Below, in pieces: positions 5,296 through 64,000 of a stretch of 64,000 nucleotides of DNA (positions within the stretch are counted from its first letter, which is position 1; each line of letters begins with the position of its first letter). The notes below the pieces were generated by a model that was not told the origin of the DNA, searched no databases, and saw only the letters and a program-made list of their open reading frames with translations. This DNA comes from Hyaloraphidium curvatum SAG 235-1. Lineage: Eukaryota; Fungi; Monoblepharomycota. The stretch is taken from assembly GCA_025558095.1 (NCBI GenBank), contig JAIVFI010000020.1, positions 558,001-622,000 on the forward strand, given 5' to 3'. The position numbers and the translations under genes were made by a program.

Positions 5296-6291
5296 CGCGC
5301 TCCGATCCGAGCAATCGAGGGAGAGGGAAAAAAGTCCGAGCCTCCAATAGGCGACGATTGCCGCGCACGGCGCGGGGAGACGTCGGAAGCTTCCCGCTTC
5401 TTCCGCGTGCTAAGGGACTGTCCGGCGAGTGACCAAGTGTTTGCCAGGACTCAATCGGGCTCGCTGCAGGGGGAGTCCACGGCGACTGGGAGGGCGGCCG
5501 GCGAAGGTAAGTAGTAAGTAGTCGGGTGGATGGCACGGCTCAGTGGCTCTACGAGATAGGAGGGTAGTTTTGGGGGCTTCACCCTGCCAACCCAACAAAA
5601 CCGACTCATCGGACCCGACATCGAAGCGACCGGGCCATTTCTCGCGCTGAACCGCGGCGAGTTGTTCCCCTGCGCGAGATTGGCTCAGTCCCAGACTCCG
5701 GTTGGCCAGATCGTGGCTGGGAAGATGTGGCCGGGAGTCTCTCGCGCCCGCTGTTCGTCAACGTCGAAATCCAGGGAACAGCGCGTGGACTCGGTGGATC
5801 TCTATTGCAATACACATGAGCCTCTCCAAATCCATTGGAGCAGGATGCACCATTGTGGGCCACAGTAGAGCTGTGGCAGGGGTGTAGAAGATTGTCGCGC
5901 CGCGGGGCCGAGCCCCACGGGCGGCGACGCCGCTCAGGTACGAGTGTGGGCTCGCGGGCCGCGCATCGGGGTTCCAGGAAGGGTCTTCGGTCATTGAACT
6001 CCGCTCCAATACACCGCGAATATGTATCCGTTGCGGCCCGAGCGCGGCCACGGTCCAACTTGGCCCGTGCTCGTGGCCCGTGCCCATGGTCCAAGCCCAT
6101 GAAGCCACTATCCAAATCCGCATCCGATGACGCCGCGTGGGCGAGGGCGTCCCATCTCCAACAAGGGGTACCCCACGCAGTTTTTGGGGGTTCGGTCTCC
6201 TCAGCCGACCAAGTGCGCGATCCGCATCCAGATCTCGCCCGCCAAACCTCGTATCATATTGTTAGTTACACATAGTCAACATTTTCAGCCA

Positions 6292-7896
6292 TCACCGGGT
6301 TGGGCAAATGACGTCCGCCGTCCCAACAACACCCGCTCCCCTCAGCAGCGTCCAAAGCGAAAACGCGACCGTCACGAGCGTCACCAGGACCCCCCGCGCA
6401 AACCCCGCGTCCACCGCGAACCCCAGCATCGTCGCCTTGCTGTTCTCGGCCGCGCGCGTGAGATCCTCGAGCACCCGGTCGTGGGCCGCCAGCACGTCCG
6501 CCGCGCCGGCGGTATCCGCGCGGGCCGCCCCGATTGCGGCTTCGCGCTTCGCACGGACGAGCATGCCCTTGGCCTCGTACGAGGCAGAGCGCAGGAGGGC
6601 CGCCACACGCTTGATCTGCTCGTTCGCGACGGCGAGGTGGAACAGGTTGAAGAGCAGGGCGTTGGAGATGAGGAGGAGCAGGGAGATTGAATAGAGCGTT
6701 ATGCAGGATCCACCTGCCTGGGATAGGAGAAGTGTGAGCAATCGAACGCGACCCGCGGCAGACCGCGCCGCACCCACGATGTTGAGGACGATGGGAACCA
6801 CTTCCTGCAGACCAAAGAGGGCGAGCGACGCTTGTCCGCTTTGAATCCAAAAGTGGCCACGTTCCCAGACGCGCGACAACCGGGTCACGAGCACCTCGAA
6901 AAGATCCTCTCTGGGCAGCTGCTCCCAGTCGACAGGGAACCCCGAAAAGAGCGCGTCGTGGTACCGGGCAAGGAAGTCGCGCAGGGCAAGGTAGAGGGAA
7001 CGGTGTTGCAACCGCAAGGAGAGGCGCAGGAGCGACACGCTGGATTGCGGCAGCACAAGGAAAGTGACCGGAGTGTGTACAAGGGTCGCAAGCAGGAGGA
7101 AGACGCCCAAAGCGGCCCAGCCGGAGCTCCAAAATAGGGGTGCAAACGTGACCAGCGCCGTCCAGCCAGTGAAGATGCATGCAGCGATCCCGAACGCAAT
7201 GTTGAGGACGACCGCGCCCATGTAGAGCCACCCTGTGGACAGAACGAGCCTGCCCGCGCACTCCGGGAGCGAACAGGGGCACAACGGATCCGCACGATCG
7301 TGCGTCACCAGGATGCTCCGGGTAGCCGAGGATCCAATGCCATGCTCGGCCGCCACGTCTTCCTTTTGATCGGCGCCGCTTGCGGCCGAGGAAATCTCTA
7401 TCAGCTGGAGATATCGCACCAGGCTGGCAAAGGGATGGGAATCAAACGCGCTCCCGCCCACCGACGACGGCAGAAGCGTCGATCCGGAAAGAAGCCGCCG
7501 GAAACCGTCGGCGGTGGAGTGGATCAGGATCAGCGCCGCGTGGGACAGCCCGAGCGCGGCCGTGCCAAAGGCCATCTGCCGCGCACCGAAAGTGCCGGCA
7601 CTATCGTTGAACAGCCACACGGGAATCAGGAGCAGGGCCGCGGCCACGGAAACCGAGCAGGCCCTGAACGCATACGAACGAGCGGCCCACGGCCCGAGAG
7701 CGAAGGAGAGTTTGGAGAACCCGCGCAGGACCGGGAGGCCGGAAAACGCGCGCGACACGGTGTCCGGCGACAGCGGTTCGGCGTCGCGGAGACCGGCCGC
7801 GGGATCCGCGGGCGCCGGAGTGGGTCCAATCTGCGCGGCGACGCCGAGGTCCGCGGGCAGCAGTGCGAGCCACTCGCGCTCCCGAAACGAGAGCAT
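6292..7896 (-). CDS. 7-TM membrane protein, gustatory-receptor-like (7TMIC/GRL/DUF3537-like) family, copy 1; in-frame intron 6718-6777
   Basis: About seven hydrophobic segments; HDRADPLCPCSLPECAG loop; C-terminus ATMLGFAVDAGFARGVLVTLVTVAFSLWTLLRGAG; paralogous to the 59-63.5 kb genes. The gene is well supported; the family assignment is an inference. Confidence 0.75.
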   Translation of the reverse strand: MLSFREREWLALLPADLGVAAQIGPTPAPADPAAGLRDAEPLSPDTVSRAFSGLPVLRGFSKLSFALGPWAARSYAFRACSVSVAAALLLIPVWLFNDSAGTFGARQMAFGTAALGLSHAALILIHSTADGFRRLLSGSTLLPSSVGGSAFDSHPFASLVRYLQLIEISSAASGADQKEDVAAEHGIGSSATRSILVTHDRADPLCPCSLPECAGRLVLSTGWLYMGAVVLNIAFGIAACIFTGWTALVTFAPLFWSSGWAALGVFLLLATLVHTPVTFLVLPQSSVSLLRLSLRLQHRSLYLALRDFLARYHDALFSGFPVDWEQLPREDLFEVLVTRLSRVWERGHFWIQSGQASLALFGLQEVVPIVLNIVGAARSAAGRVRLLTLLLSQAGGSCITLYSISLLLLISNALLFNLFHLAVANEQIKRVAALLRSASYEAKGMLVRAKREAAIGAARADTAGAADVLAAHDRVLEDLTRAAENSKATMLGFAVDAGFARGVLVTLVTVAFSLWTLLRGAGVVGTADVICPTR

Positions 7897-23613: not shown

Positions 23614-25260
23614 CTATCCCTTCCTGTCCGAGATCCTCACCCTCGACCTCTTTGCCGGCCACACAGTCCCGATCCCCGTCCTCCCTCTCACGTAATCGTC
23701 CCCCCCGTCCTCGACGAGCTCAAGGTCGTACGCAGCCAACAGCACCCCAGCCGCGCACCGCATCTCGCCCCTGGCAAAGTTGCGCCCCGGGCACATGCTC
23801 GCACCCCCGCCGAAAGGTGAGGTGCGCGCCGTCGTCTTGGCGGGCCCGGCGGCGATGTGCCGCGAGGGGTCGAACGCGTCGACAGGGCTGGCGTCGTCGG
23901 CGTACAGCCCGGGGTCGCGGTGAACCGCCTCCGGAACGAAGAAGAACAGTCGGGTGCCCCGCGGCAGGTTGTATGGGGTGCCGGGGAGCGCGCATCCGCC
24001 CTCGGTCATCGCCTCGCGGATGACAAACGTGCTCATGGTGTGGCGCAGGGTCTCTGTCAGCGCGGCGTCCAGGACGGGGGTGGGGTGTGAAGGGTCGAAG
24101 GCGCCCGAGGCGCACGCGGCGCGAGCTTCGGCGACGCAGTCGGCGGCCCAGGAGCGGCCGTCGCGGAGGCCGCGAAGCAGGTGGAGTATGAGCCAGTATG
24201 CCGTCGGCCCGGTGTTGACGTGCGACACCCAGTGCAGGATCAGCAGGGACTTGCCGATGGCCTTTCGCCCCGTGTGGGGCAGCCGGATGTGCAGCATCGA
24301 GAGCACGAGGTTGACGACAAACGGGGATGGGAGCTCCGCGGGCGTGTCGTAGTCCGCCGCGGGGATCTCGGGGGCCTTGTCGCGCGAGATGCCGGGGCAG
24401 CCGTCGATGAGGGGGATCCAGTTGTCGGTCCACTGGTCGCCGGGATCGTAGAAGTCCTCGAGAAAGGTGATGGCTTCCTGCTGCTCCTTTGGAAGCATCG
24501 ACCGCGGGACGACCTGCAGGGCAGGGAATGCGGCGTCGAAGAGCATCATCTTCGAGAGGGTGTGTGTCGACAATCCGGAGGCCTTGTCCTCCGCGGCCGT
24601 CGGTCCGACGACCGGGAAGCGCGTGCCGAACATGGCTAGGCTACCGCCGTACCACACTAGGCGGTTCATCAGGTCGAACAGGTCCACCTCGAGCTCCCCG
24701 CCAAGCGGTACCTCGGCTCGGAGCTTCTCGGCAAACGGCGGCACGAACCGCGCCGTCAGCCTACTGAAATCATTGAGCAAGTACTTTTGCATGACCTTGT
24801 GATCCGAAGCCGCCTGCGCCGGATATGTCCAACCCCCGCCGAGGACCGAGGCGGTGTCCATGCCAGTGAGCCGTCCAAACGCCTCGCTCTTGACGGGATC
24901 GAAGCTGAAATTCCTCGCGTCGCGCATCACGGCCGCGTACACGGCGGGATCGAGCACGTAGACCGCGTCTTTGCCCATGACCGTCATCGAGAACACCGGG
25001 CCGTGCCGCTTCTCGAGACGCCGCAGCAGACCCGGGCCGTCGTTTCCCAGCTCCAACGCGTGGCCGGCGTACGGCAGCCAGCCGGCCGCGTGAGGCGGGG
25101 AGCCTGGCGGCCGCGGCGCCCATTTCCGGTTGAAGACGCGCAGGGAGACAAAATACGCGGCGATTAGCACGGCGACGGAATAGGCCGCGGGGTGTCCGAA
25201 TCGAGAGGCGAGGAAGAGCGCCGCGGCGGCGGCCAGCACGGGCACGGGCGTCGAGAGCAT
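23614..25260 (-). CDS. cytochrome P450, CYP7/CYP8-like, intronless
   Basis: N-terminal anchor; GWLPYAGHAL; I-helix WVSHVNTGPT; ETLR; FDPSR; heme motif PFGGGASMCPGRNFA. Confidence 0.93.
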   Translation of the reverse strand: MLSTPVPVLAAAAALFLASRFGHPAAYSVAVLIAAYFVSLRVFNRKWAPRPPGSPPHAAGWLPYAGHALELGNDGPGLLRRLEKRHGPVFSMTVMGKDAVYVLDPAVYAAVMRDARNFSFDPVKSEAFGRLTGMDTASVLGGGWTYPAQAASDHKVMQKYLLNDFSRLTARFVPPFAEKLRAEVPLGGELEVDLFDLMNRLVWYGGSLAMFGTRFPVVGPTAAEDKASGLSTHTLSKMMLFDAAFPALQVVPRSMLPKEQQEAITFLEDFYDPGDQWTDNWIPLIDGCPGISRDKAPEIPAADYDTPAELPSPFVVNLVLSMLHIRLPHTGRKAIGKSLLILHWVSHVNTGPTAYWLILHLLRGLRDGRSWAADCVAEARAACASGAFDPSHPTPVLDAALTETLRHTMSTFVIREAMTEGGCALPGTPYNLPRGTRLFFFVPEAVHRDPGLYADDASPVDAFDPSRHIAAGPAKTTARTSPFGGGASMCPGRNFARGEMRCAAGVLLAAYDLELVEDGGDDYVRGRTGIGTVWPAKRSRVRISDRKG

Positions 25261-25347
25261 CGCGGGCGGGGTCCAGCCCGTTTCCGTCCGAGCGGTGGGA
25301 TGCGTGGCCACCAAGCGGCCGGCATCCATATCCGAATCAAGCTTACA

Positions 25348-45303: not shown

Positions 45304-47079
45304 CTACAGCCTACCCCTGGCCTGCGCCCCCCCCGCTGGTATCTCCACGCCCCCGGGCAGCTCGACCACGTACTCCCTCCCCCAATCCGTCTCCCTCTCC
45401 AGCGACGCCGCGTACTCCTTGAACGTGCCCGGGTACCCCGCCGAGGGCATCATCGTCGGGTCGCGCTGGTTGAACCTGGATCGGGGGTCATCGTCCTCCG
45501 CCAGCGGGGCGCACAGGCAAGGGAGGAACACGCACCAGCTCGTGCACCCGGCGGTGAACACGTACCCCTTGAGCCCCTCCGCCAACCACCGCATGTACTG
45601 TTCCTCCGCCTCTGGTCTCGGCCTGATGGACGGCAACGGGCCCCCCGGCTCCCGCATCCCCGCCGCCTTCTCCAGCATCCGCACCAGGTACGCCGCCTGC
45701 ACTTCCACGCCGTAGCACACCGGGTAGATGGGCGAATGGCACGTCCAGGTCGCGAACGAGTTGGGCTGGGTGCTGGTGCAGACGCTGTACAGGTGCGTGT
45801 TGCGGCGGCCGCCCTGCCACGCGTCCGAGAGGAGCACGCCGTCCAGGCCCCGTTGGGGGAAGGGCGGAAGCATGGTGACGTTGTAGCCCGTGCAGAGGAC
45901 GAGCACGTCGCAGGGCACTTCGGTGCCGTCCGAGAGGTGCACCGTGCGCTCCGACATGCGCTTGATGGACGCCACCCTGAGCTCCACATTCGGCTGGTTG
46001 AAGCACTGGGCAAAGTCGTCCGTCGGGCAGGGCCGCTTGCACGCGAACGGGAACGGGAACCGCAGCGCCTCGTAGTCCTTCCTGCTCTTCAGGCTCCACC
46101 ACAGGCTCCAGTCCGACACCCGGCTGACGACGAACTGCTGCACGCTGTTTTTCCTGAACGCCGGCTCGAGGGTGCTGGAGAAGCCGCGAAGGAGGGACTG
46201 CCGGTGCGCTTCGAGCGCCGCGGGGTCCGAGGCGAACCTGGCGCGCTGCGCGGGGGTGTATTCGGGGTTGCCGCCGCGGGGGACGTACGGGGTCGAGGTG
46301 CGCTGGAGGACGGTGATCCTGTTGTGCGGGTGGCGCGCGAGGGAGGGGAGGATCTGCACCGAGGAGGAGCCGGTGCCGACAAGGACGACGTGGGTCACAC
46401 CGGAGGCCGGATCGGCGGGAACGGTGTGGTCCCAGGTCGTGTCCCACTGCACCGAAGAACGCGTCAGGTGGATCAGGGTAATGGCGATTTGGGAGGAACC
46501 CACCCGCGCAGAGTGCATCTTGCGGCCCTTGAAGCCTTCGATGTTTGGCAGCTCGGGCCACGCGGGCTCGTTGACAAAGCCCGTGCACCTGACGAGCCAC
46601 TCGGCTTCGACCTTTTCCGCTGTCCCCGTGGGCACGATGACCGGGATCCCCTTGCGTTCGCTCCCGGTCACGGGCCTCCCGAACCCGTCCACGAACTCGG
46701 TCCGCACGTGCTGGACGTCCAGCACCCACAAATTCCTCGCCCCGTCCCAGGTCGCCGCCGCCACCCTCTTCCCGGTCTCCACCGCCGCCTCGAACCCGAC
46801 CTCCCTGGCCACCATGCCGACGTACTCCCTGACCTCCTCCCCGGGGGCGAATTTCCTGCTCCATCCCGCGTGCGGCGCCCACTCGAACGTGTAGGTATGC
46901 GCCTCGTTGTCCAGCCCCACCCCCGGGTACCGCGCATCGTGCCACGTCCCGCCCGTCGCGTCGGACCTTTCGAACACGCGCACGGAAGCGAACCCGGCGA
47001 GCCGCAGGCGCCGGAAGACCGAGACGGCGCAGACGCCGGCGCCGACGACGGCGATGCGGACGTCGGCGCGGGAGGACAT
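45304..47079 (-). CDS. flavin-containing monooxygenase, Baeyer-Villiger type, two in-frame introns
   Basis: VVGAGVC, GGTWHDARYPG, fingerprint FKGRKMHSAR|WD, VGTGSSSVQI, CKRP, LCTGY, GCTSW|F. Confidence 0.92.
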   Translation of the reverse strand: MSSRADVRIAVVGAGVCAVSVFRRLRLAGFASVRVFERSDATGGTWHDARYPGVGLDNEAHTYTFEWAPHAGWSRKFAPGEEVREYVGMVAREVGFEAAVETGKRVAAATWDGARNLWVLDVQHVRTEFVDGFGRPVTGSERKGIPVIVPTGTAEKVEAEWLVRCTGFVNEPAWPELPNIEGFKGRKMHSARVGSSQIAITLIHLTRSSVQWDTTWDHTVPADPASGVTHVVLVGTGSSSVQILPSLARHPHNRITVLQRTSTPYVPRGGNPEYTPAQRARFASDPAALEAHRQSLLRGFSSTLEPAFRKNSVQQFVVSRVSDWSLWWSLKSRKDYEALRFPFPFACKRPCPTDDFAQCFNQPNVELRVASIKRMSERTVHLSDGTEVPCDVLVLCTGYNVTMLPPFPQRGLDGVLLSDAWQGGRRNTHLYSVCTSTQPNSFATWTCHSPIYPVCYGVEVQAAYLVRMLEKAAGMREPGGPLPSIRPRPEAEEQYMRWLAEGLKGYVFTAGCTSWCVFLPCLCAPLAEDDDPRSRFNQRDPTMMPSAGYPGTFKEYAASLERETDWGREYVVELPGGVEIPAGGAQARGRL

Positions 47080-47619
47080 GGCGGGAGGGGGGCAGGGCGG
47101 GAGACAGGGCGGCGGGTGGCGGGCGTGTTGGCGCCGCTTGGGCGTCCACGATGGTTCTTTGCGCAAGTACCCCGGGTACGCGAACCGGATGCCTGCCGCG
47201 GATGAAGACATCTGGCTTCCATCCGGGCATTGCTCCGATCGCCCTCCTGCGATCGCGGTGTCTGCATAGAGCCAGCACCGAGGCAAGGCGGCCCTGTCCA
47301 TGCCCGCGCGGCGCGGCGCAGGCAGCAGGGCTTCGACCATCCAGGACGATGAACCCCTTCCAGTGCCCTTCCATTGACGTGTCGCGGTTCAGTGACGGTT
47401 TCTGGCGGGGTGTGTCCCAATTTGGGGACCCGAGAACTCCGCCCGCCTGCGGCCCAGGCGCTGCGCCCCTTCCAGGGTCCGCTCAAGAAGGGACACAAGG
47501 ACACCTTCCGCCCGCCCAGCAGCGCTCCCGCCGGTCTCCGCACCCGCCGGCCCATCGGCACTCGTCCCGCCGCAACGACAGCCTTCCCGACCCCGTGCCG
47601 CCGCAGCGCCCGCGCCGCC

Positions 47620-55332: not shown

Positions 55333-56520
55333 TCAAGCCCCCCCGGGACCACCTGCACCTTCTGCCGCTCGGGTGCAAGCTTCGCGGTGGCCCCCTTTCC
55401 AAGCGGCGATCTGGCACTCGGAGGAGCAGTAGTGTGCGACCTTGCACCGCGAGCATCTCTTCATCCCCTGCTGCGCGACGGAACCGCAGTGATCGCAGGT
55501 CAAGGGCACGGCGCCTTCCGTCCTCAGGTTCCTGGAGATGCGCTTTGCATTGGCCATCCGGGCCTCTACCGGGATCCCATTCACGGGCGCAACGCCCGGG
55601 CTCGACAGGATGAAGGCATTGAAGAGACTTCCGAGTTCGGCGGCGTTGGCGCACGGCCTGGGGGGGATCATGCCTCTGCACCACCTTGCGAACTCCTTGA
55701 AGAAGGTCGCGAAAACCAGGCCCTCGCCATCGTCCCCTAGGACGGTTGCTCCGCGATCCCTGCTCCATTTCGTGGGATTCTCGCCCACGATCCCAAGAGA
55801 CTGCACGAGTGTGCCGAAAGCCACTCCAACCAAGCCCTTTGCCTTCTGGTCCAAAGGTGCTCCGTCGCGGTAGCAGGCCGCCTTTTGGACCACGTAGTCG
55901 GAGGCACCGTTGCGCATAAGAGCGTCCAGGAAGTCGGAGTCCGCAAGGAGGCGCTTCCGAACGGGCCGCGCTCGGGTCAAGATCGTGAGCATCAGCAGCG
56001 CGGACTCGGCAATCTGCCCAAAGGAGGAAGAGAAAGGCTTCAACCTTTCGACCTCGACGAGGGCGCTGGGAGACACCGGGAGCTTGAAGTCCAAGCAGGG
56101 CCACCCGTCCCCGGCGAACGTCCACTCTTTCTGGTTCTCTGCAGAAGCGAAAGCCATGTAGGCCGCACGAAGCGCGGGCCAGATGCGCACAAAGACGGCT
56201 TCCCAGATGGTCGCAAACCACGGGTCATTGACATGTTCGTAGCTGCTGATCTGGGCCGCTGGAAAGCCGGCCGGAAAGAACGGCGTGAGCTTCGCCGTCC
56301 CGTTGGGGGAGAAGGCGACGAGCAAGTTCTGCGCTTCGATGAGCTGATTGTACCCGCTGGAGCGGAGCAAGCCGGCCGAGTCACTCGACGGCTTCGGTGT
56401 GTTCTTGAGCACGGAAGCTTCGAAAGCCGTGAAGAAGCCGTCCATGCGGTCGGTCCCGGCACCGACGAATGCCCCCTTGTCGAACCGCTCCCAGCCCTTC
56501 GGAGCAGCCGGTTGCGCCAT
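55333..56520 (-). CDS. MYND zinc-finger protein, intronless
   Basis: CDHC...MKRCSRCKVAHYCSSECQIAAWKGGHREAC at the C-terminus. Confidence 0.9.
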   Translation of the reverse strand: MAQPAAPKGWERFDKGAFVGAGTDRMDGFFTAFEASVLKNTPKPSSDSAGLLRSSGYNQLIEAQNLLVAFSPNGTAKLTPFFPAGFPAAQISSYEHVNDPWFATIWEAVFVRIWPALRAAYMAFASAENQKEWTFAGDGWPCLDFKLPVSPSALVEVERLKPFSSSFGQIAESALLMLTILTRARPVRKRLLADSDFLDALMRNGASDYVVQKAACYRDGAPLDQKAKGLVGVAFGTLVQSLGIVGENPTKWSRDRGATVLGDDGEGLVFATFFKEFARWCRGMIPPRPCANAAELGSLFNAFILSSPGVAPVNGIPVEARMANAKRISRNLRTEGAVPLTCDHCGSVAQQGMKRCSRCKVAHYCSSECQIAAWKGGHREACTRAAEGAGGPGGA

Positions 56521-58990: not shown

Positions 58991-60634
58991 TCACGGCGTA
59001 TGGCATGCCATGTCCACCGTATACACGACCCCCGCCCCCCTCAGCAGCGTCCAAATGCCCAGCCCCACGGTCAGCGTCGTCGCCAGCAGCGCCCTTGCGA
59101 GCTGCGGCGTCGCCACGAGCCCGAAGATGCGCGCCAGCTGCCCGTCCCCCGCGAGGAGGAACGACTCCAGCAGGCGCGCGTGGTCCTCCAGGGATGCCAG
59201 CGCCTCGCGCGCGGCATCCGGGTTCGGTGGCGGGGGGAAGACGCGGGAGAGGTGCGCGAGCTCGCGGATCTCGCGGATGGCCGAGGCGTACAGGTTTCTG
59301 ACGGCGCTGACCTGCGAGTTGCTCGTACCGAGCACGACAGCGTCGACAAAGACGGTGTACAGGATGAGAATCGCGAGCGGGACGACCCAGCCGACGATGC
59401 AGGAGCCCACGGCGACGTTGACGACGAGTCCGACGAGGAGGCCCGAGGCCGAGACGATGGTGAAACTCAGGTTGCTGGCCTGGACCCTGGTCCGCCACCG
59501 CACCGAGACGGCAGAGTGGAGCGAGACGTAGGCTTCGGGGCCGTCGGCGGGTTGGACGAGCCGTTCTGAGGGGCCGAGGAGCGCGTCCCGGTGCCGGGCC
59601 AGCATCGATGACAAGGCTAGCTTGGCCGCGCGATGCTGAAGCCTTTGCTCCAGGCGAAAGTGGGGCATGGAAGAGTAGGAATTTGTTAGATCGCGCACGG
59701 ATGATATGCCGAGGATGGCGACTGGGTGGAAGGCGAAGTCAGCGTCCTCAACAACGCGAGGGCACGGGCCGGACCAACCGTAGCCAACGGCCAAGAGGCC
59801 GCTCCACCAGCTCGAAAAAGTCAGCGCCCGAAACGTGATCATCGCCGTCCATACCAGCGACAGCATGTACCAGATTTTGGCCGATTGCCCAGTGACCCAC
59901 GCGACTGCCGCGAACGCGGCTGCGTGGCGGGGGGCGTTGCCGGCGCACCGGGGCGATGGGTACGGGCACAGGGCGTCCTTGCTCTCGTGGGCGACGAGGG
60001 CGGACGTTTCGCCGGCGAGTTCGTGCTCCTCCAAACGTGCCCCCGAGCTTGTCCGGACCAACTCGCTCCAGCGCGCCAGGGTCGCGTGCGGGTGCCCGCT
60101 CTCGTCGTCTGTTGCTTCGGGGATCGCGGAGCTCGCCCGGCCGATGTACAAGCGAACGGAAGGGGATGCCAGCAGGAGCGCGATCCACAGAGCCCAGGCA
60201 AACACTACGCAGGCGGTTCCGGCGGCCAGCTGCGCAGTGGCAAAGGGCCTGCCGAGCTCCGCGTTGAAGACCCAGAGGGGCGCGAAGAGCGACAGTCCGA
60301 GCGCGCTCCACCAGAAAGGAAGCACTAGCGGCTTGATGAACCGCGTCATGGCCCGCGACAGCCGCAGCTGCAGCGCCAGTAGCGCGCTCCATGGCCGCAA
60401 GTCGCGGACCAACGCGTCGAAGGTTAGCGGTTCCGCGGCGCGGAGGGCCGCCGCGGGGTCGAACACGGCGGCGTGCGGCAGCACCGAGTCGGAGGCGTCC
60501 GGCGCGGAGGGGAATAAAACCAGCCATTCGCGGGGGGCGAAGCGGAACGGTGCGGCTGCGGAGCCCGGAATCGCCGCCGAGGGGGCCGCTCCCTTCGCGT
60601 CGGCGAGGCCCGTCGCCGACATTTCCACCGACAT
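58991..60634 (-). CDS. 7-TM GRL/7TMIC-like family, copy 2; in-frame intron 59722-59778
   Basis: REWLVLFP...DPAAALRAAEPL; HESKDALCPYPSPRCAG; RLQHRAAKLAL; ARIFGLVATPQLARALLATTLTVGLGIWTLLRGAGV...C. Confidence 0.75.
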   Translation of the reverse strand: MSVEMSATGLADAKGAAPSAAIPGSAAAPFRFAPREWLVLFPSAPDASDSVLPHAAVFDPAAALRAAEPLTFDALVRDLRPWSALLALQLRLSRAMTRFIKPLVLPFWWSALGLSLFAPLWVFNAELGRPFATAQLAAGTACVVFAWALWIALLLASPSVRLYIGRASSAIPEATDDESGHPHATLARWSELVRTSSGARLEEHELAGETSALVAHESKDALCPYPSPRCAGNAPRHAAAFAAVAWVTGQSAKIWYMLSLVWTAMITFRALTFSSWWSGLLAVGYGWSGPCPRVVEDADFAFHPVAILGISSVRDLTNSYSSMPHFRLEQRLQHRAAKLALSSMLARHRDALLGPSERLVQPADGPEAYVSLHSAVSVRWRTRVQASNLSFTIVSASGLLVGLVVNVAVGSCIVGWVVPLAILILYTVFVDAVVLGTSNSQVSAVRNLYASAIREIRELAHLSRVFPPPPNPDAAREALASLEDHARLLESFLLAGDGQLARIFGLVATPQLARALLATTLTVGLGIWTLLRGAGVVYTVDMACHTP

Positions 60635-60807
60635 CTTCTCCGACGACCAACGCGGCCGGCAGGATCCCGTCGCCGGCGGGTCGAGGTCGGAGTGCGGCCC
60701 CGTGTTTATTTGACGCGGCGAGGCGTTCCTCATCTCTGTCTCCCGCCACCGCCCTCCCCTCCACGGTGTTAATCGCGACGCCGCCACGCCGCTCCGCGGT
60801 TCATTCC

Positions 60808-61723
60808 ATGGAAGAAGCTCTCGCCAGCTCGGAGCCGCGGGGATCCGGCGATCCCGCCGGCGCACTGCGGGCCGAACGGCCGCTGACGCGCGCGCGGCTG
60901 CTCCAGGGGCTGGCCGCCTCGTCGCGGACGCTGCGCGACCTCACGAGGCTGCAGTTCGTTTCGCAGTCCTTGGGGAGGAACCTTCCCTACTTCATCGTCC
61001 TTGTCATCGTGCTCATTGCGCCTCTCACGGCGACCGCGTGGACGTGGGGCTCGTTCGGGACGAGCCAGCTTGCCGTGGGCACCGCGTTCCTCTTTGCTCT
61101 CCTTCTTTTGTTCTTGTTTTCGGCGGGACTGCTGGCGACCTTCCGCGGCAGGCACACCAACGCCATTGGCCGGACGGGCTCCGTGGCTGCCGGCACGAAC
61201 AGACCGGAACCCGAGGTCAGCAACCACGCTTTGGCCGTGTTTGTTCGATACGAGGAGCTCCGCGAATCCAGCGCATCGCAGAGCACGTCCAGCTCCGTGA
61301 TTCTGCAGCACGACCCGGGGGATGTCATGTGCCCATGCGACCTGGCTTCCTGCGCCGGGAAGCTGCCGCGCCAGGCTTCATTCTGGCACCTCGTCTATTT
61401 GACCGCACTCACCTTGTTAAACTTGGCAGTCTTTCTCCTATTCGTCTACACACCGCTCGTCACTCTTCGCGAGAGTGTGTGGAGCACGGCCTGGTCTGGG
61501 ACCGTCCCCGCGATCTACTGCGCCGTCACCATCCCGTCTCATCCTTGTTCCCAACGCCAGGCAATCGGCGAACGTCACCGCGCTCTCTCTTTCCTCGCGC
61601 GTCTCCAACCGCGCCATCGCCGCCTCCCTGCGCTCCCTCCTGTCCCGCCTCCACTTTTCCCTGGACCGCGCACGGGCTGCCCTTCCCCCACCCGACGACC
61701 GTCTCTCCTGGTGGTGCGAATAA
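60808..61723 (+). pseudogene. 7-TM GRL/7TMIC-like family, copy 3; frameshifted and 3'-truncated
   Basis: DPAGALRAERPL; FGTSQLAVGT; HDPGDVMCPCDLASCAG; VWSTAWS; the post-TM4 motif SRVSNRAIAASLRSLLSR is in another frame (ORF 61475-61723) and then stops; TM5-7 absent. Confidence 0.75.
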
Positions 61724-61910
61724 TACGCTCATCTCTATTTGGAGGAAGCGAGATGGGGCACTTTGATGCTCAGTGATACGATCGCTGGGGCTGTTGAGCT
61801 GCGAGGTTCGGCCGCTGGACGACGCCCGAAGCCTTCCCACGCTCGCTATCCGATCGCTCCAGCATGTCGCGATCGACAAGGTCCACGCATCGAAAGCCTC
61901 CTGCAGCTGC

Positions 61911-63477
61911 TCACGCGGGACAGAACGTCTCGAGCACCACCACGATCCCCACCCCCCGGAGCACCCCCCACAGCGCCGCGGCCAGCGTGACAACCGATGC
62001 GAGGACGGTCCTGATGACGCCGTAGTCGATCCTGACCCCCGCCAGCCTCGCCGCCGCCTCCTCGTCCGCGGCCCGGAACTCGGCCAGCGCGCGGTAGTGC
62101 CACCCCGCCGCCGCCTGGAACGCCGATCCGTCGGGCCCGGGGCGGGCGGCGGCGGCGCGCAGGGCGATCGAGCGGACCTCGGCCGCGGCGTCGCGGTACA
62201 GCCCCGTGGCGCGGGCGATGCGGGCGTTGCTGTCGGCCGCGATGACGAGGTCGATGGAAGCAAAGACGAGCCACCAGCCGACCCAAGCGAGCTGCCACGC
62301 CGTGATGCACCCCGCGATCTAAGCGGGAGGCGGGAGGGTCAGCAGGCGTTGGAAAGCAACGGGAACGGTAACGAACCCCGTTCAGGAGGAAGGCCACGGC
62401 GGCGCAGAGGACAAAGGCCACAACCATCCGCCACGTCAGCTCCACGTGCACCATGCCCGTCGCCCACGAGTTCTGCAGCGCCGCGTTGAGCGCCACGTAC
62501 GGCTCCTCCGGCCCCGGAATCGGCAGCGCGGGGTCGTCCGCCGCGGCTTCGAGGCGCCGGATGGTCCGGAGCAGGGCGACCGATAGCATGCGGCGCTGGA
62601 GGCCGGCTTGGAGGTGCGAGAGAGAGGCCGTGTTGATGACGACGGCGCGCAGAGCCCAGACGGAGAAGAATAGGAAGGCGGCGCAGAGGACCAGGAAGAA
62701 AGTGATGGCCCAGGGCGACGACCAGAAGAATGGCGCGTAGGTGAAGGCTGGGGTGGCGAGGAGCAGGATCCCAACGAAAAGGTGGAGGAGGGACAGGCCG
62801 ACGAGGTCGGCGAGCTTCTCCCAAATGACGTTCCGGATGATGCGCCCGCAGCATGCCGGCCGGTCGCAGGGGCAGAAGGCGTCCCCGTCCTCGTGAATCA
62901 ACAGAGGCGACAACCGGTCTTTGCCCCCGCCGTCCCGACCCTCCTCAATGAGCTTCTGGCGGCGCAACCAGATGGAAAGGGTAGAACGCGTGGAGAGGAA
63001 GTCGACGCCGGCGAGGTCGCGGGGCATGGGCCCGCGGCTGCTGCCGAGCATCACGGCCCCACGGAGGATCCACCAGGCGTAGCCCCAAAAGACGCAGAAC
63101 AGCTGGAGGGCCGCGGCGACGGTGCCGAGGGCCACGTTGCGGGGCGGGAACCGCTCCGGATCCCGGGAAGCCAGCGAAGCGGCGGCAGCGAGGGCAGGCA
63201 CGCCAAGGCATCCCGCGATCAACTCCCGCCACAACATCGAAAACCGCACCGCAAAGGCCGCGAAGACGCGCACCAGCCACGCGAGAGGAGCGGCGCCCCC
63301 GCGCGAGAGCGCCACCGCGGCGGGGCCGGACAGCAGCGGATCCGCGGCGCGGAGCTCCGCGGCCGGCTCGGCCGGCGGCGATATCCACCGAGGGAACGAC
63401 GGCAGCGCCGCGGCGGGGAACACTGCCGCCCATTCGCGGGCAGTCGGCACGAAATCGACGGGGTCGTCGGCCTCCAT
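61911..63477 (-). CDS. 7-TM GRL/7TMIC-like family, copy 4; intron 62319-62376
   Basis: REWAAVFP...EPAAELRAADPL; HEDGDAFCPCDRPACCG; exon 2 IAGCITAWQL...ARLAGVRIDYGVIRTVLASVVTLAAALWGVLRGVGIVVVLETFCPA*. Confidence 0.78.
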
Positions 63478-64000
63478 GTGGAGGACGCGGCGCCGGTGAT
63501 TAGCGAAGGAACGGCGGAACCCGATGTGTATACGAATCGTAGCGTCCGCTCACTTGCCGACGTGGGTCCCGATCGCGCAAGTATGGCAGAGACCATAGAT
63601 CTACAGATTCCAGAGATGTCGCAGCGCAGCACGCGTATTCAAGCCTCCTTGCTGAATATTGCTCTCACGCCGTACCTGCCCGCTTGGTACCGCCGACCGC
63701 GTGGCAATGGAAAGGGTCAAACCTGGCGCCTCCCGAGTAAAGATGATGTGGATTTATTCCGATGTTGAAAGATAGGAGGCCTCCCGTGAGTGTGGCAAAC
63801 CCGTTGTACGTGTAACGTGGGGGCAGGTTCAACCATCTTGCTTGGCTCAGGCGAGGAGGCGTGGATACCCTTGCTACGTGCATCTGCAAGGTGCACATCC
63901 AGCGGATCTCGACAGTGATTGATCGGGATGACCAACCTCGGGGCGAGGAGGACGGGTCCTCGCGATCGAACGTTCCGAGGTTCCAACCCACCGTCAACGC

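Follow-up and report, generated by a model that had tools for sequence, protein, structure and literature searches.

Copies of a divergent membrane-protein family in the window

The window analysed here is a stretch of 64,000 nucleotides (contig C20:558001-622000) within the 31.9-Mb assembly of Hyaloraphidium curvatum (55 contigs), an atypical non-flagellated fungus of the Monoblepharidomycota that was formerly mistaken for a colourless green alga (PMC8371127). The window is rich in G+C (62-72%) and contains long open reading frames (ORFs) in all six frames. Among these are copies of a family of proteins with seven predicted transmembrane segments (TM1 to TM7), for which a preliminary description, made from the letters of the window, had proposed kinship with the ion channels of seven transmembrane domains (7TMICs), the superfamily to which the odorant receptors (ORs) and the gustatory receptors (GRs) of insects belong. 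The four paralogs named there, at 6292-7896, 58991-60634, 60808-61723 and 61911-63477, were all recovered by BLASTP and tblastn, and the start of a fifth was located at the end of the window. The family features in the window are as follows, with positions counted from its first nucleotide.

6292..7896 (-): paralog 1, open ORF of 534 codons plus stop
6714..6773 (-): candidate in-frame intron of paralog 1, 60 nt, GTGCGG..CTCAC..CAG, in the TM5-TM6 loop (ORF residues 376-395)
58991..60634 (-): paralog 2, open ORF of 547 codons plus stop, found in the ORF listing, by BLASTP and by tblastn
59722..59778 (-): candidate in-frame intron of paralog 2, 57 nt, GTTGGT..CTGAC..CAG, inside TM4
60808..61614 (+): paralog 3, truncated copy with TM1-TM4 and the His/Cys motif only; the enclosing ORF is open to 61776
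61911..62318 (-): paralog 4, exon 2, 134 aa followed by Ala and the stop codon, with TM6, the two parts of TM7 (TM7a and TM7b) and the C-terminal tail
62319..62376 (-): paralog 4, intron, 58 nt, with GTTCGT donor, CTGAC branch site and TTAG acceptor
62377..63477 (-): paralog 4, exon 1, 367 aa, with the N-terminal motif and TM1-TM5
63928..64000 (+): paralog 5 (KAI9019125.1 = P0125), start of the gene model, which continues past the window end

Paralogs 1 and 2 (6295-7896 and 58994-60634) are 30% identical from end to end (BLASTP, E = 1e-40). Paralog 1 also matched the ORF at 61849-63477(-) with E = 3e-14, the match being limited to the first 375 aa, and the C-terminal 134 aa of paralog 4 were found by tblastn in a different frame, at 61917-62318. 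When 25 family members were compared with the window by tblastn, matches were obtained at paralogs 1-4 only, including the fragment at 60769/60850-61614(+). The top protein match of paralog 1 was a hypothetical protein of H. curvatum.

Paralog 3 is a real family copy, as first described, but its extent had been overestimated: the family match ends at 61614, covers family residues ~30-322 only (tblastn), and lacks TM5-TM7. Its closest relatives are loci on contigs C25 (55% identity) and C28 (49% identity). No 3′ half matching paralog 3 was found in a genome search in which the best 150 of 537 candidates were scored, and the gap between paralog 3 and the end of paralog 4 is only ~300 bp, into which TM5-TM7 would not fit.

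Paralog 5 lies at C20:621928-623582(+), head-to-head with paralog 4, and its first 24 codons, those inside the window, are identical to the start of P0125. The annotated start of paralog 5 carries 28 extra residues ahead of the Met that aligns with the start of paralog 4. Searched exon by exon, paralog 4 is 73% identical to residues 30-397 of P0125 in exon 1 and 93% identical to residues 398-531 in exon 2; the sequence comparison indicates that paralog 5 is the recent inverted duplicate partner of paralog 4. The higher identity in exon 2 suggests either gene conversion of the 3′ part or a much stronger constraint on the putative pore half.

Gene structures and short introns

In the preliminary description, 61911-63477 had been read as a pseudogene. 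This reading was rejected, because the change of frame between 62318 and 62377 is explained by a canonical 58-nt intron at 62319-62376, the length of which accounts for the shift. The annotation of P0125 is spliced at a junction identical to that of paralog 4, joining LLNG to IAGC, and exon 2 of paralog 4 runs directly into the G-x-C with which TM6 starts in the family, the coding sequence ending at 61911-61913. As the intron carries splice signals and P0125 uses the same junction, paralog 4 (61911-63477) is an intact gene.

The seemingly intronless ORFs of paralogs 1 and 2 probably each hold a short in-frame intron as well. In paralog 1, the 20 residues in question are missing from its ortholog in a related species (P0002, described below) and from 20 of 24 other aligned members, the predicted local distance difference test score (pLDDT) of the structural model is low there, and the candidate intron occupies the same loop as the intron of paralog 4. 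Once it is removed, the true product of paralog 1 would probably be 514 aa long. Of 109 aligned sequences, no more than 10 have residues in the 18 alignment columns taken up by the insert of paralog 2. The 11 other rows shown are empty there, and the pLDDT of the paralog 2 model falls below 50 at residues 288-295. About 20-residue inserts at the TM5-TM6 loop are also present at three other loci of the genome (L002, L017 and L020).

The NCBI model of paralog 1 (DFJ74DRAFT_728699, P0001; window positions 6266-7896(-)) is identical to the ORF through residue 375. Because a 56-nt variant of the intron is used in it instead of the 60-nt in-frame one, the frame is shifted and the last 149 residues are without similarity to the family ORF. 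Further annotated members of the family, with lengths of just 311-394 aa, may likewise be wrongly modelled. Stop-free, in-frame candidate introns of 57-60 nt make genes in this GC-rich genome appear intronless to ORF scans.

Topology and conserved residues

Hydropathy, loop lengths and charge were averaged over 25 family members, and residue conservation was counted across 109 aligned family sequences. The family-averaged hydropathy confirmed the seven hydrophobic segments noted before: there are exactly seven membrane segments, and they coincide with helices of the AlphaFold2 models. The segments on the side of the N-terminus (the N-terminus itself and the TM2-TM3, TM4-TM5 and TM6-TM7 loops) average 90, 78, 71 and 70 aa, whereas those on the opposite side average 6, 18, 6 and 14 aa; the very short TM5-TM6 loop of the earlier account is among the latter, averaging 6 aa. 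Lys and Arg together number 34.4 per protein on the N-terminal side and 1.9 on the other, and 9.6 versus 3.1 when only the 12-aa flanks of the segments are counted, the N-terminal side being favoured in 25 of 25 proteins. For a bias of this kind, the positive-inside rule predicts with high confidence a cytoplasmic N-terminus and an outside C-terminus, the inverse of G protein-coupled receptors (GPCRs). The expected arrangement, N-terminus inside with seven segments, was thus borne out, and a GPCR reading was rejected, as neither the topology nor the fold is GPCR-like.

Sequence conservation is unevenly distributed. TM7b and the tail show 44% mean pairwise identity and the cytoplasmic parts 28-33%, and the membrane parts of TM1-2, TM3-4 and TM5-6 only 20-22%. 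Conservation is highest in TM7b and lowest in the membrane core, a pattern that parallels that of the insect receptors. The N-terminal motifs and three C-terminal strings listed in the preliminary description were found in the sequences.

The cytoplasmic TM2-TM3 loop contains the motif L-[LV]-x-H-x3-D-x2-C-P-C-x(2-4)-C-[AS]-G, in which the His is present in 109/109 sequences, the three Cys in 109, 107 and 109, and the Asp in 103. Paralog 2 is an exception at the second Cys of C-P-C (Cys in 107/109), carrying Tyr at residue 225. The three inner Cys and the His of this loop probably form a metal (zinc) site. A Cys at the outer start of TM6 and an Asn at its inner end are each present in 107/109 sequences, and the Gly preceding TM7b in 106/109; the Asn after TM6 and the Gly turn ahead of the final helix had both been picked out in the window copies alone. 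Residues conserved within TM7b and beyond it are Arg (100), Thr (86), Thr (106), Trp (80), Arg (97) and Gly (100 of 109), and the C-terminal end carries a terminal Cys-Pro in 105/109. In the models of both paralogs 1 and 2, a strand at the TM6 Cys is paired with a strand of the C-terminal tail a few residues ahead of the terminal Cys, and the outer Cys of TM6 and the C-terminal Cys are probably joined in an extracellular disulfide.

Predicted structures and structural searches

AlphaFold2 was run with family alignments on paralogs 1 and 2 as unspliced ORFs, so that each model includes 19-20 residues that are probably intron-encoded and that lie in a low-confidence loop. The models reached a pLDDT of 87.3 and a predicted template modelling score of 0.86 for paralog 1, and 86.9 and 0.87 for paralog 2. 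A helix of 31 residues follows TM4, TM5 and TM6 are helices of 49 and 54 residues, and TM4-TM6 reach far into the cytoplasm, where they make a helical bundle with TM7a. After TM6 come the cytoplasmic TM7a (24 residues), the conserved Gly turn, and TM7b, a 24-residue helix in the membrane; the split TM7 spans residues 462-485 and 497-520 in paralog 1 and residues 472-499 and 510-533 in paralog 2. The long helices after TM4 and TM6 and the TM4-TM7a anchor, anticipated from the sequence, are therefore present in both models.

The only full-length structural superpositions of either model were with insect ORs and GRs, over 290-350 residues and with the seven helices in order; the top matches of paralog 2 were OR5, OR5 of the Orco complex and OR10. 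In Foldseek searches of the PDB, insect Gr64a ranked first for both models, and Gr43a, BmGr9 and AgOR28 took most of the top ranks for paralog 1. A superposition on 7TMIC structures, the absence of which had been named in advance as an argument against the assignment, was in this way obtained over the full length and with insect ORs and GRs only, and no family of transporters or of any other kind matched better. A shape search of the ESM Atlas returned clusters of cnidarian and echinoderm proteins, unnamed and 395-419 aa long, with TM-scores of 0.62-0.68 normalised by target over 360 aligned residues. Language-model neighbours among the named clusters, which serve as leads only, included Tmp39 (0.93-0.94), DUF3537 (0.90-0.92) and several 7tm_7 and GUR clusters (0.84-0.86). 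The ESM Atlas clusters nearest to paralog 1 by language-model features (0.96) are unnamed ciliate families labelled 'transmembrane protein'. A tetramer prediction with four chains of paralog 2 residues 306-547 gave a score of 0.00, with the alignment unused and the fold of the chain itself uncertain, and counts neither way.

Family size, spread and evolution

The genome was searched with five different queries, each search scoring only ~80-150 of 537-886 first-look candidates. At least 139 distinct loci were found on most of the 55 contigs (81 from the first search, 25, 11 and 20 from later searches, and window paralogs 3 and 4), so that the expansion noted from four copies is far larger than the window indicated. 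Every search turned up new places, and the weakest scored full-length locus in one search still had E = 1e-102; the locus lists are therefore not limited by significance, and the count gives a minimum. The majority of scored loci are uninterrupted along their whole length, and some are fragments or bear stops; the in-frame stops mark either pseudogenes or introns.

A profile search, exhaustive over 1.84 billion cluster representatives (50%-identity clusters), yielded 466, 423 and 297 clusters at E thresholds of 1e-3, 1e-10 and 1e-30, respectively. As 297 clusters passed the strictest threshold and 28 of 30 clusters sampled from the top 150 were NCBI hypothetical proteins of H. curvatum, the family is likely to number a few hundred genes. 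Word-index homology searches returned the query's own model, one protein of a sister species and one or two paralogs only, and are uninformative for such a divergent, Ala/Leu-rich family.

The sister-species protein, P0002, is encoded on a 74-kb contig (L031) of the Logan assembly SRR26194948, which belongs to a distinct related species, and is the ortholog of paralog 1. It is 39-43% identical to paralog 1 and is its sister in the tree, whereas the adjoining enzyme shares 74% identity with that of H. curvatum. The family is therefore older than the split from this species and is evolving fast. The neighbours of P0002 on the contig are genes for a PALP enzyme (the one with 74% identity), a YVC1-type TRP channel, a hamartin-like protein and a PP2C protein.

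The median terminal branch in the family tree is 0.92 changes per site. Paralogs 2, 3 and 4 are not sisters, and paralogs 4 and 5 are the only recent pair; the cluster in the window is not a recent tandem array, this pair excepted. Tandem pairs and triplets occur elsewhere, for example on C19 (at 88.5, 90.3 and 92.0 kb) and on C10 (at 743 and 745 kb). Signs of the birth-and-death evolution proposed in the preliminary description are present in the truncated copy, the recent inverted duplicate, the stop-bearing loci and the tandem arrays elsewhere; the tandem cluster named there for the window is a recent one for paralogs 4 and 5 only.

Among the other genes of the window are a cytochrome P450 gene at 23617-25329(-) (E = 4e-22), a flavin/NAD-binding monooxygenase-like ORF at 45307-47340(-) and a gene for a zf-MYND protein at 55336-56520(-). 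Several further long ORFs of the window had no Pfam match.

Interpretation and alternative explanations

From the predicted structures, we consider it highly probable that these ~500-residue membrane proteins have the 7TMIC fold and form a very large, fast-evolving, lineage-specific expansion in H. curvatum. The structural features by which 7TMICs are recognised (Benton et al. 2020; Benton & Himmel 2023) are present in the family, and the sequence features of GR/GRL (GR-like), OR and DUF3537 proteins proper are absent from it.

Several results weigh against this assignment and against a chemosensory role. The structural evidence comes entirely from predicted structures, and Foldseek gave no PDB match at E ≤ 1e-3, the E values being 0.02-0.1 and the TM-scores low. 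Nothing in Pfam, including 7tm_6, 7tm_7, Trehalose_recp and DUF3537, was matched at E ≤ 10 by the four window proteins or by 25 family members, and the models PF12056 and PF08395 found no match in the whole genome in a search in which the controls were silent too. Family profiles run against all PDB sequences retrieved no OR or GR and chance matches only (VMA21, kumopsin, S20). The sequence-level link to 7tm_7, 7tm_6 and DUF3537 that had been envisaged thus did not appear in either Pfam or profile searches. The TM7 motif of GRs, (T/S)Y-h5-(Q/K/E)(F/L/M), was found in the last 60 residues of 0/109 sequences. Finally, H. curvatum is non-flagellated, so that a textbook role in chemotaxis is not obvious (PMC8371127).

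An alternative that keeps the fold is that the proteins belong to the PHTF-like Class-B or to a separate deep branch, instead of being relatives of the Class-A GRLs, and that they act within the cell, for example in the endoplasmic reticulum, and not as surface chemoreceptors. The present data make this unlikely. The first intracellular loop is far shorter than the >300 aa of PHTF, and the nearest predicted structures are the animal clusters of 395-419 aa and not proteins of 700 aa; the language-model neighbours include clusters of DUF3537, 7tm_7 and GUR. More than 100 fast-diverging paralogs, a variable core and an apparent outer disulfide are also more in keeping with a sensor that faces outward than with a housekeeping protein.

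The assignment to the 7TMICs is made at the level of the fold, at which the match would be compatible with homology or with convergence. The similarity could accordingly be one of helical arrangement only, the family being an unrelated fungal group of seven-segment proteins that have no tetrameric pore and serve another role, such as that of membrane scaffolds, transporters or enzyme-linked receptors using the His/Cys metal site. This explanation is improbable in our view. Alignments over 290-350 residues that keep the order of all seven helices were obtained with ORs and GRs only, for each of two paralogs modelled separately; the rare topology of seven segments with the N-terminus inside, the split TM7 and the long TM4-TM6 occur together; and conservation in the family peaks at the helix that forms the pore lining of insect receptors. 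As for the modest structural scores, accepted distant 7TMICs such as PHTF score alike, and they too are without sequence similarity (PMC9998090).

The 62-72% G+C of the window, its long ORFs in six frames and the presence of the family on most contigs might raise the suspicion that the loci are fortuitous ORFs of very GC-rich DNA or remnants of a repeated mobile element, with no function as genes. This is hardly conceivable and was rejected on the strength of conservation and cross-species orthology, since paralogs with ~30% identity agree in length and keep both the seven hydrophobic segments and the invariant residues, the majority of scored loci are uninterrupted from end to end, a sister species retains an ortholog, the models fold at pLDDT 87, and a median terminal branch of 0.92 changes per site speaks against a recent burst of repeats.

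Under the 7TMIC assignment, a mechanism can be outlined by analogy with the solved insect receptors. Insect Orco, MhOR5, AgOR28, AaOR10, DmGr43a, DmGr64a and BmGr9 are homo- or heterotetrameric ligand-gated cation channels. We see an even balance for and against the H. curvatum proteins likewise being ligand-gated cation channels at the cell surface. If they are, four subunits would assemble via the cytoplasmic TM4-TM7a bundle, the conserved TM7b helices would line a central cation pore, and the variable outer halves of TM1-TM6 would form the ligand pocket, as in those receptors. With a variable pocket, the many paralogs could sense many different chemicals, and the His/Cys loop may add a family-specific cytoplasmic site for regulation or assembly. 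The fullest form of this proposal, to which we give somewhat less than even weight, is that H. curvatum, an early-diverging fungus, has independently evolved an insect-scale repertoire, probably of 250-400 genes, of surface 7TMIC chemoreceptor channels, and that these carry a zinc-binding regulatory module on the cytoplasmic side, one not seen in the 7TMICs of animals or plants.

Implications and comparison with known 7TMICs

7TMICs forming large receptor repertoires are known only in animals, above all in insects. If the assignment is right, the H. curvatum family would be by far the largest 7TMIC repertoire outside animals and the first large family of chemosensory ion channels in fungi; massive birth-and-death expansion of the 7TMIC fold would then not be an animal invention, and fungi would have a candidate ionotropic chemosensory system beside GPCRs. 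The genes, mostly with a single exon or one intron, offer a compact set for asking about the ancestral role of 7TMICs. Neither Pfam nor BLAST reveals the family, whose members are annotated only as hypothetical and are mis-spliced in at least one model, which suggests that receptor diversity is being overlooked by annotation pipelines. New structural features open to testing are the conserved loop with its His/Cys motif and the pair of outer Cys.

One GRL has been described in each of two Spizellomyces species, 1-6 in protists and 4-12 DUF3537 genes in plants (Benton et al. 2020, PMC7746228), and later structural screens extended the superfamily to PHTF and to prokaryotes and divided it into Class-A and Class-B (PMC9998090; bioRxiv 10.1101/2023.08.30.555482). 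These screens describe no large repertoire in fungi and make no mention of Hyaloraphidium, and full-text literature searches gave nothing that ties 7TMICs to an expansion in fungi or to H. curvatum.

In comparison with the insect ORs and GRs, the H. curvatum family is without detectable sequence similarity and without a TM7 motif of the TYhhhhhQF type. Its N-terminal cytoplasmic region is longer and carries a conserved motif of its own, it has a 78-aa TM2-TM3 loop with the His/Cys motif as well as the outer Cys pair, its host is a non-flagellated fungus, and its channel activity is a prediction, whereas that of the insect proteins is established.

The PHTF-like Class-B proteins have a loop of >300 aa and are highly conserved and low in copy number, in contrast to the 78-aa loop, hypervariability (~30% identity) and high copy number of the H. 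curvatum family. Plant DUF3537 proteins and animal GRLs (cnidarian, echinoderm, and nematode GUR/SRR) share its predicted fold class. The DUF3537 family of plants (4-12 genes) and the protist families (1-6 genes) are small (PMC7746228), and the Pfam models for DUF3537 proteins and GRLs do not match the H. curvatum proteins.

The closest comparison in fungi is with the Spizellomyces proteins SpunGRL1 and SpalGRL1, the only Class-A 7TMICs that have been described from fungi (Benton et al. 2020, PMC7746228). Compared by description, these chytrid GRLs and the H. curvatum family both come from a zoosporic lineage of fungi, both have seven segments and an intracellular N-terminus, and both keep at most one of the four TM7 motif positions (chytrid figure: PMC7746228). 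The chytrid GRLs were found via sequence similarity to GRLs, whereas the H. curvatum family gives no such matches, and they are single-copy in Spizellomyces, as opposed to the at least 139 loci of H. curvatum.

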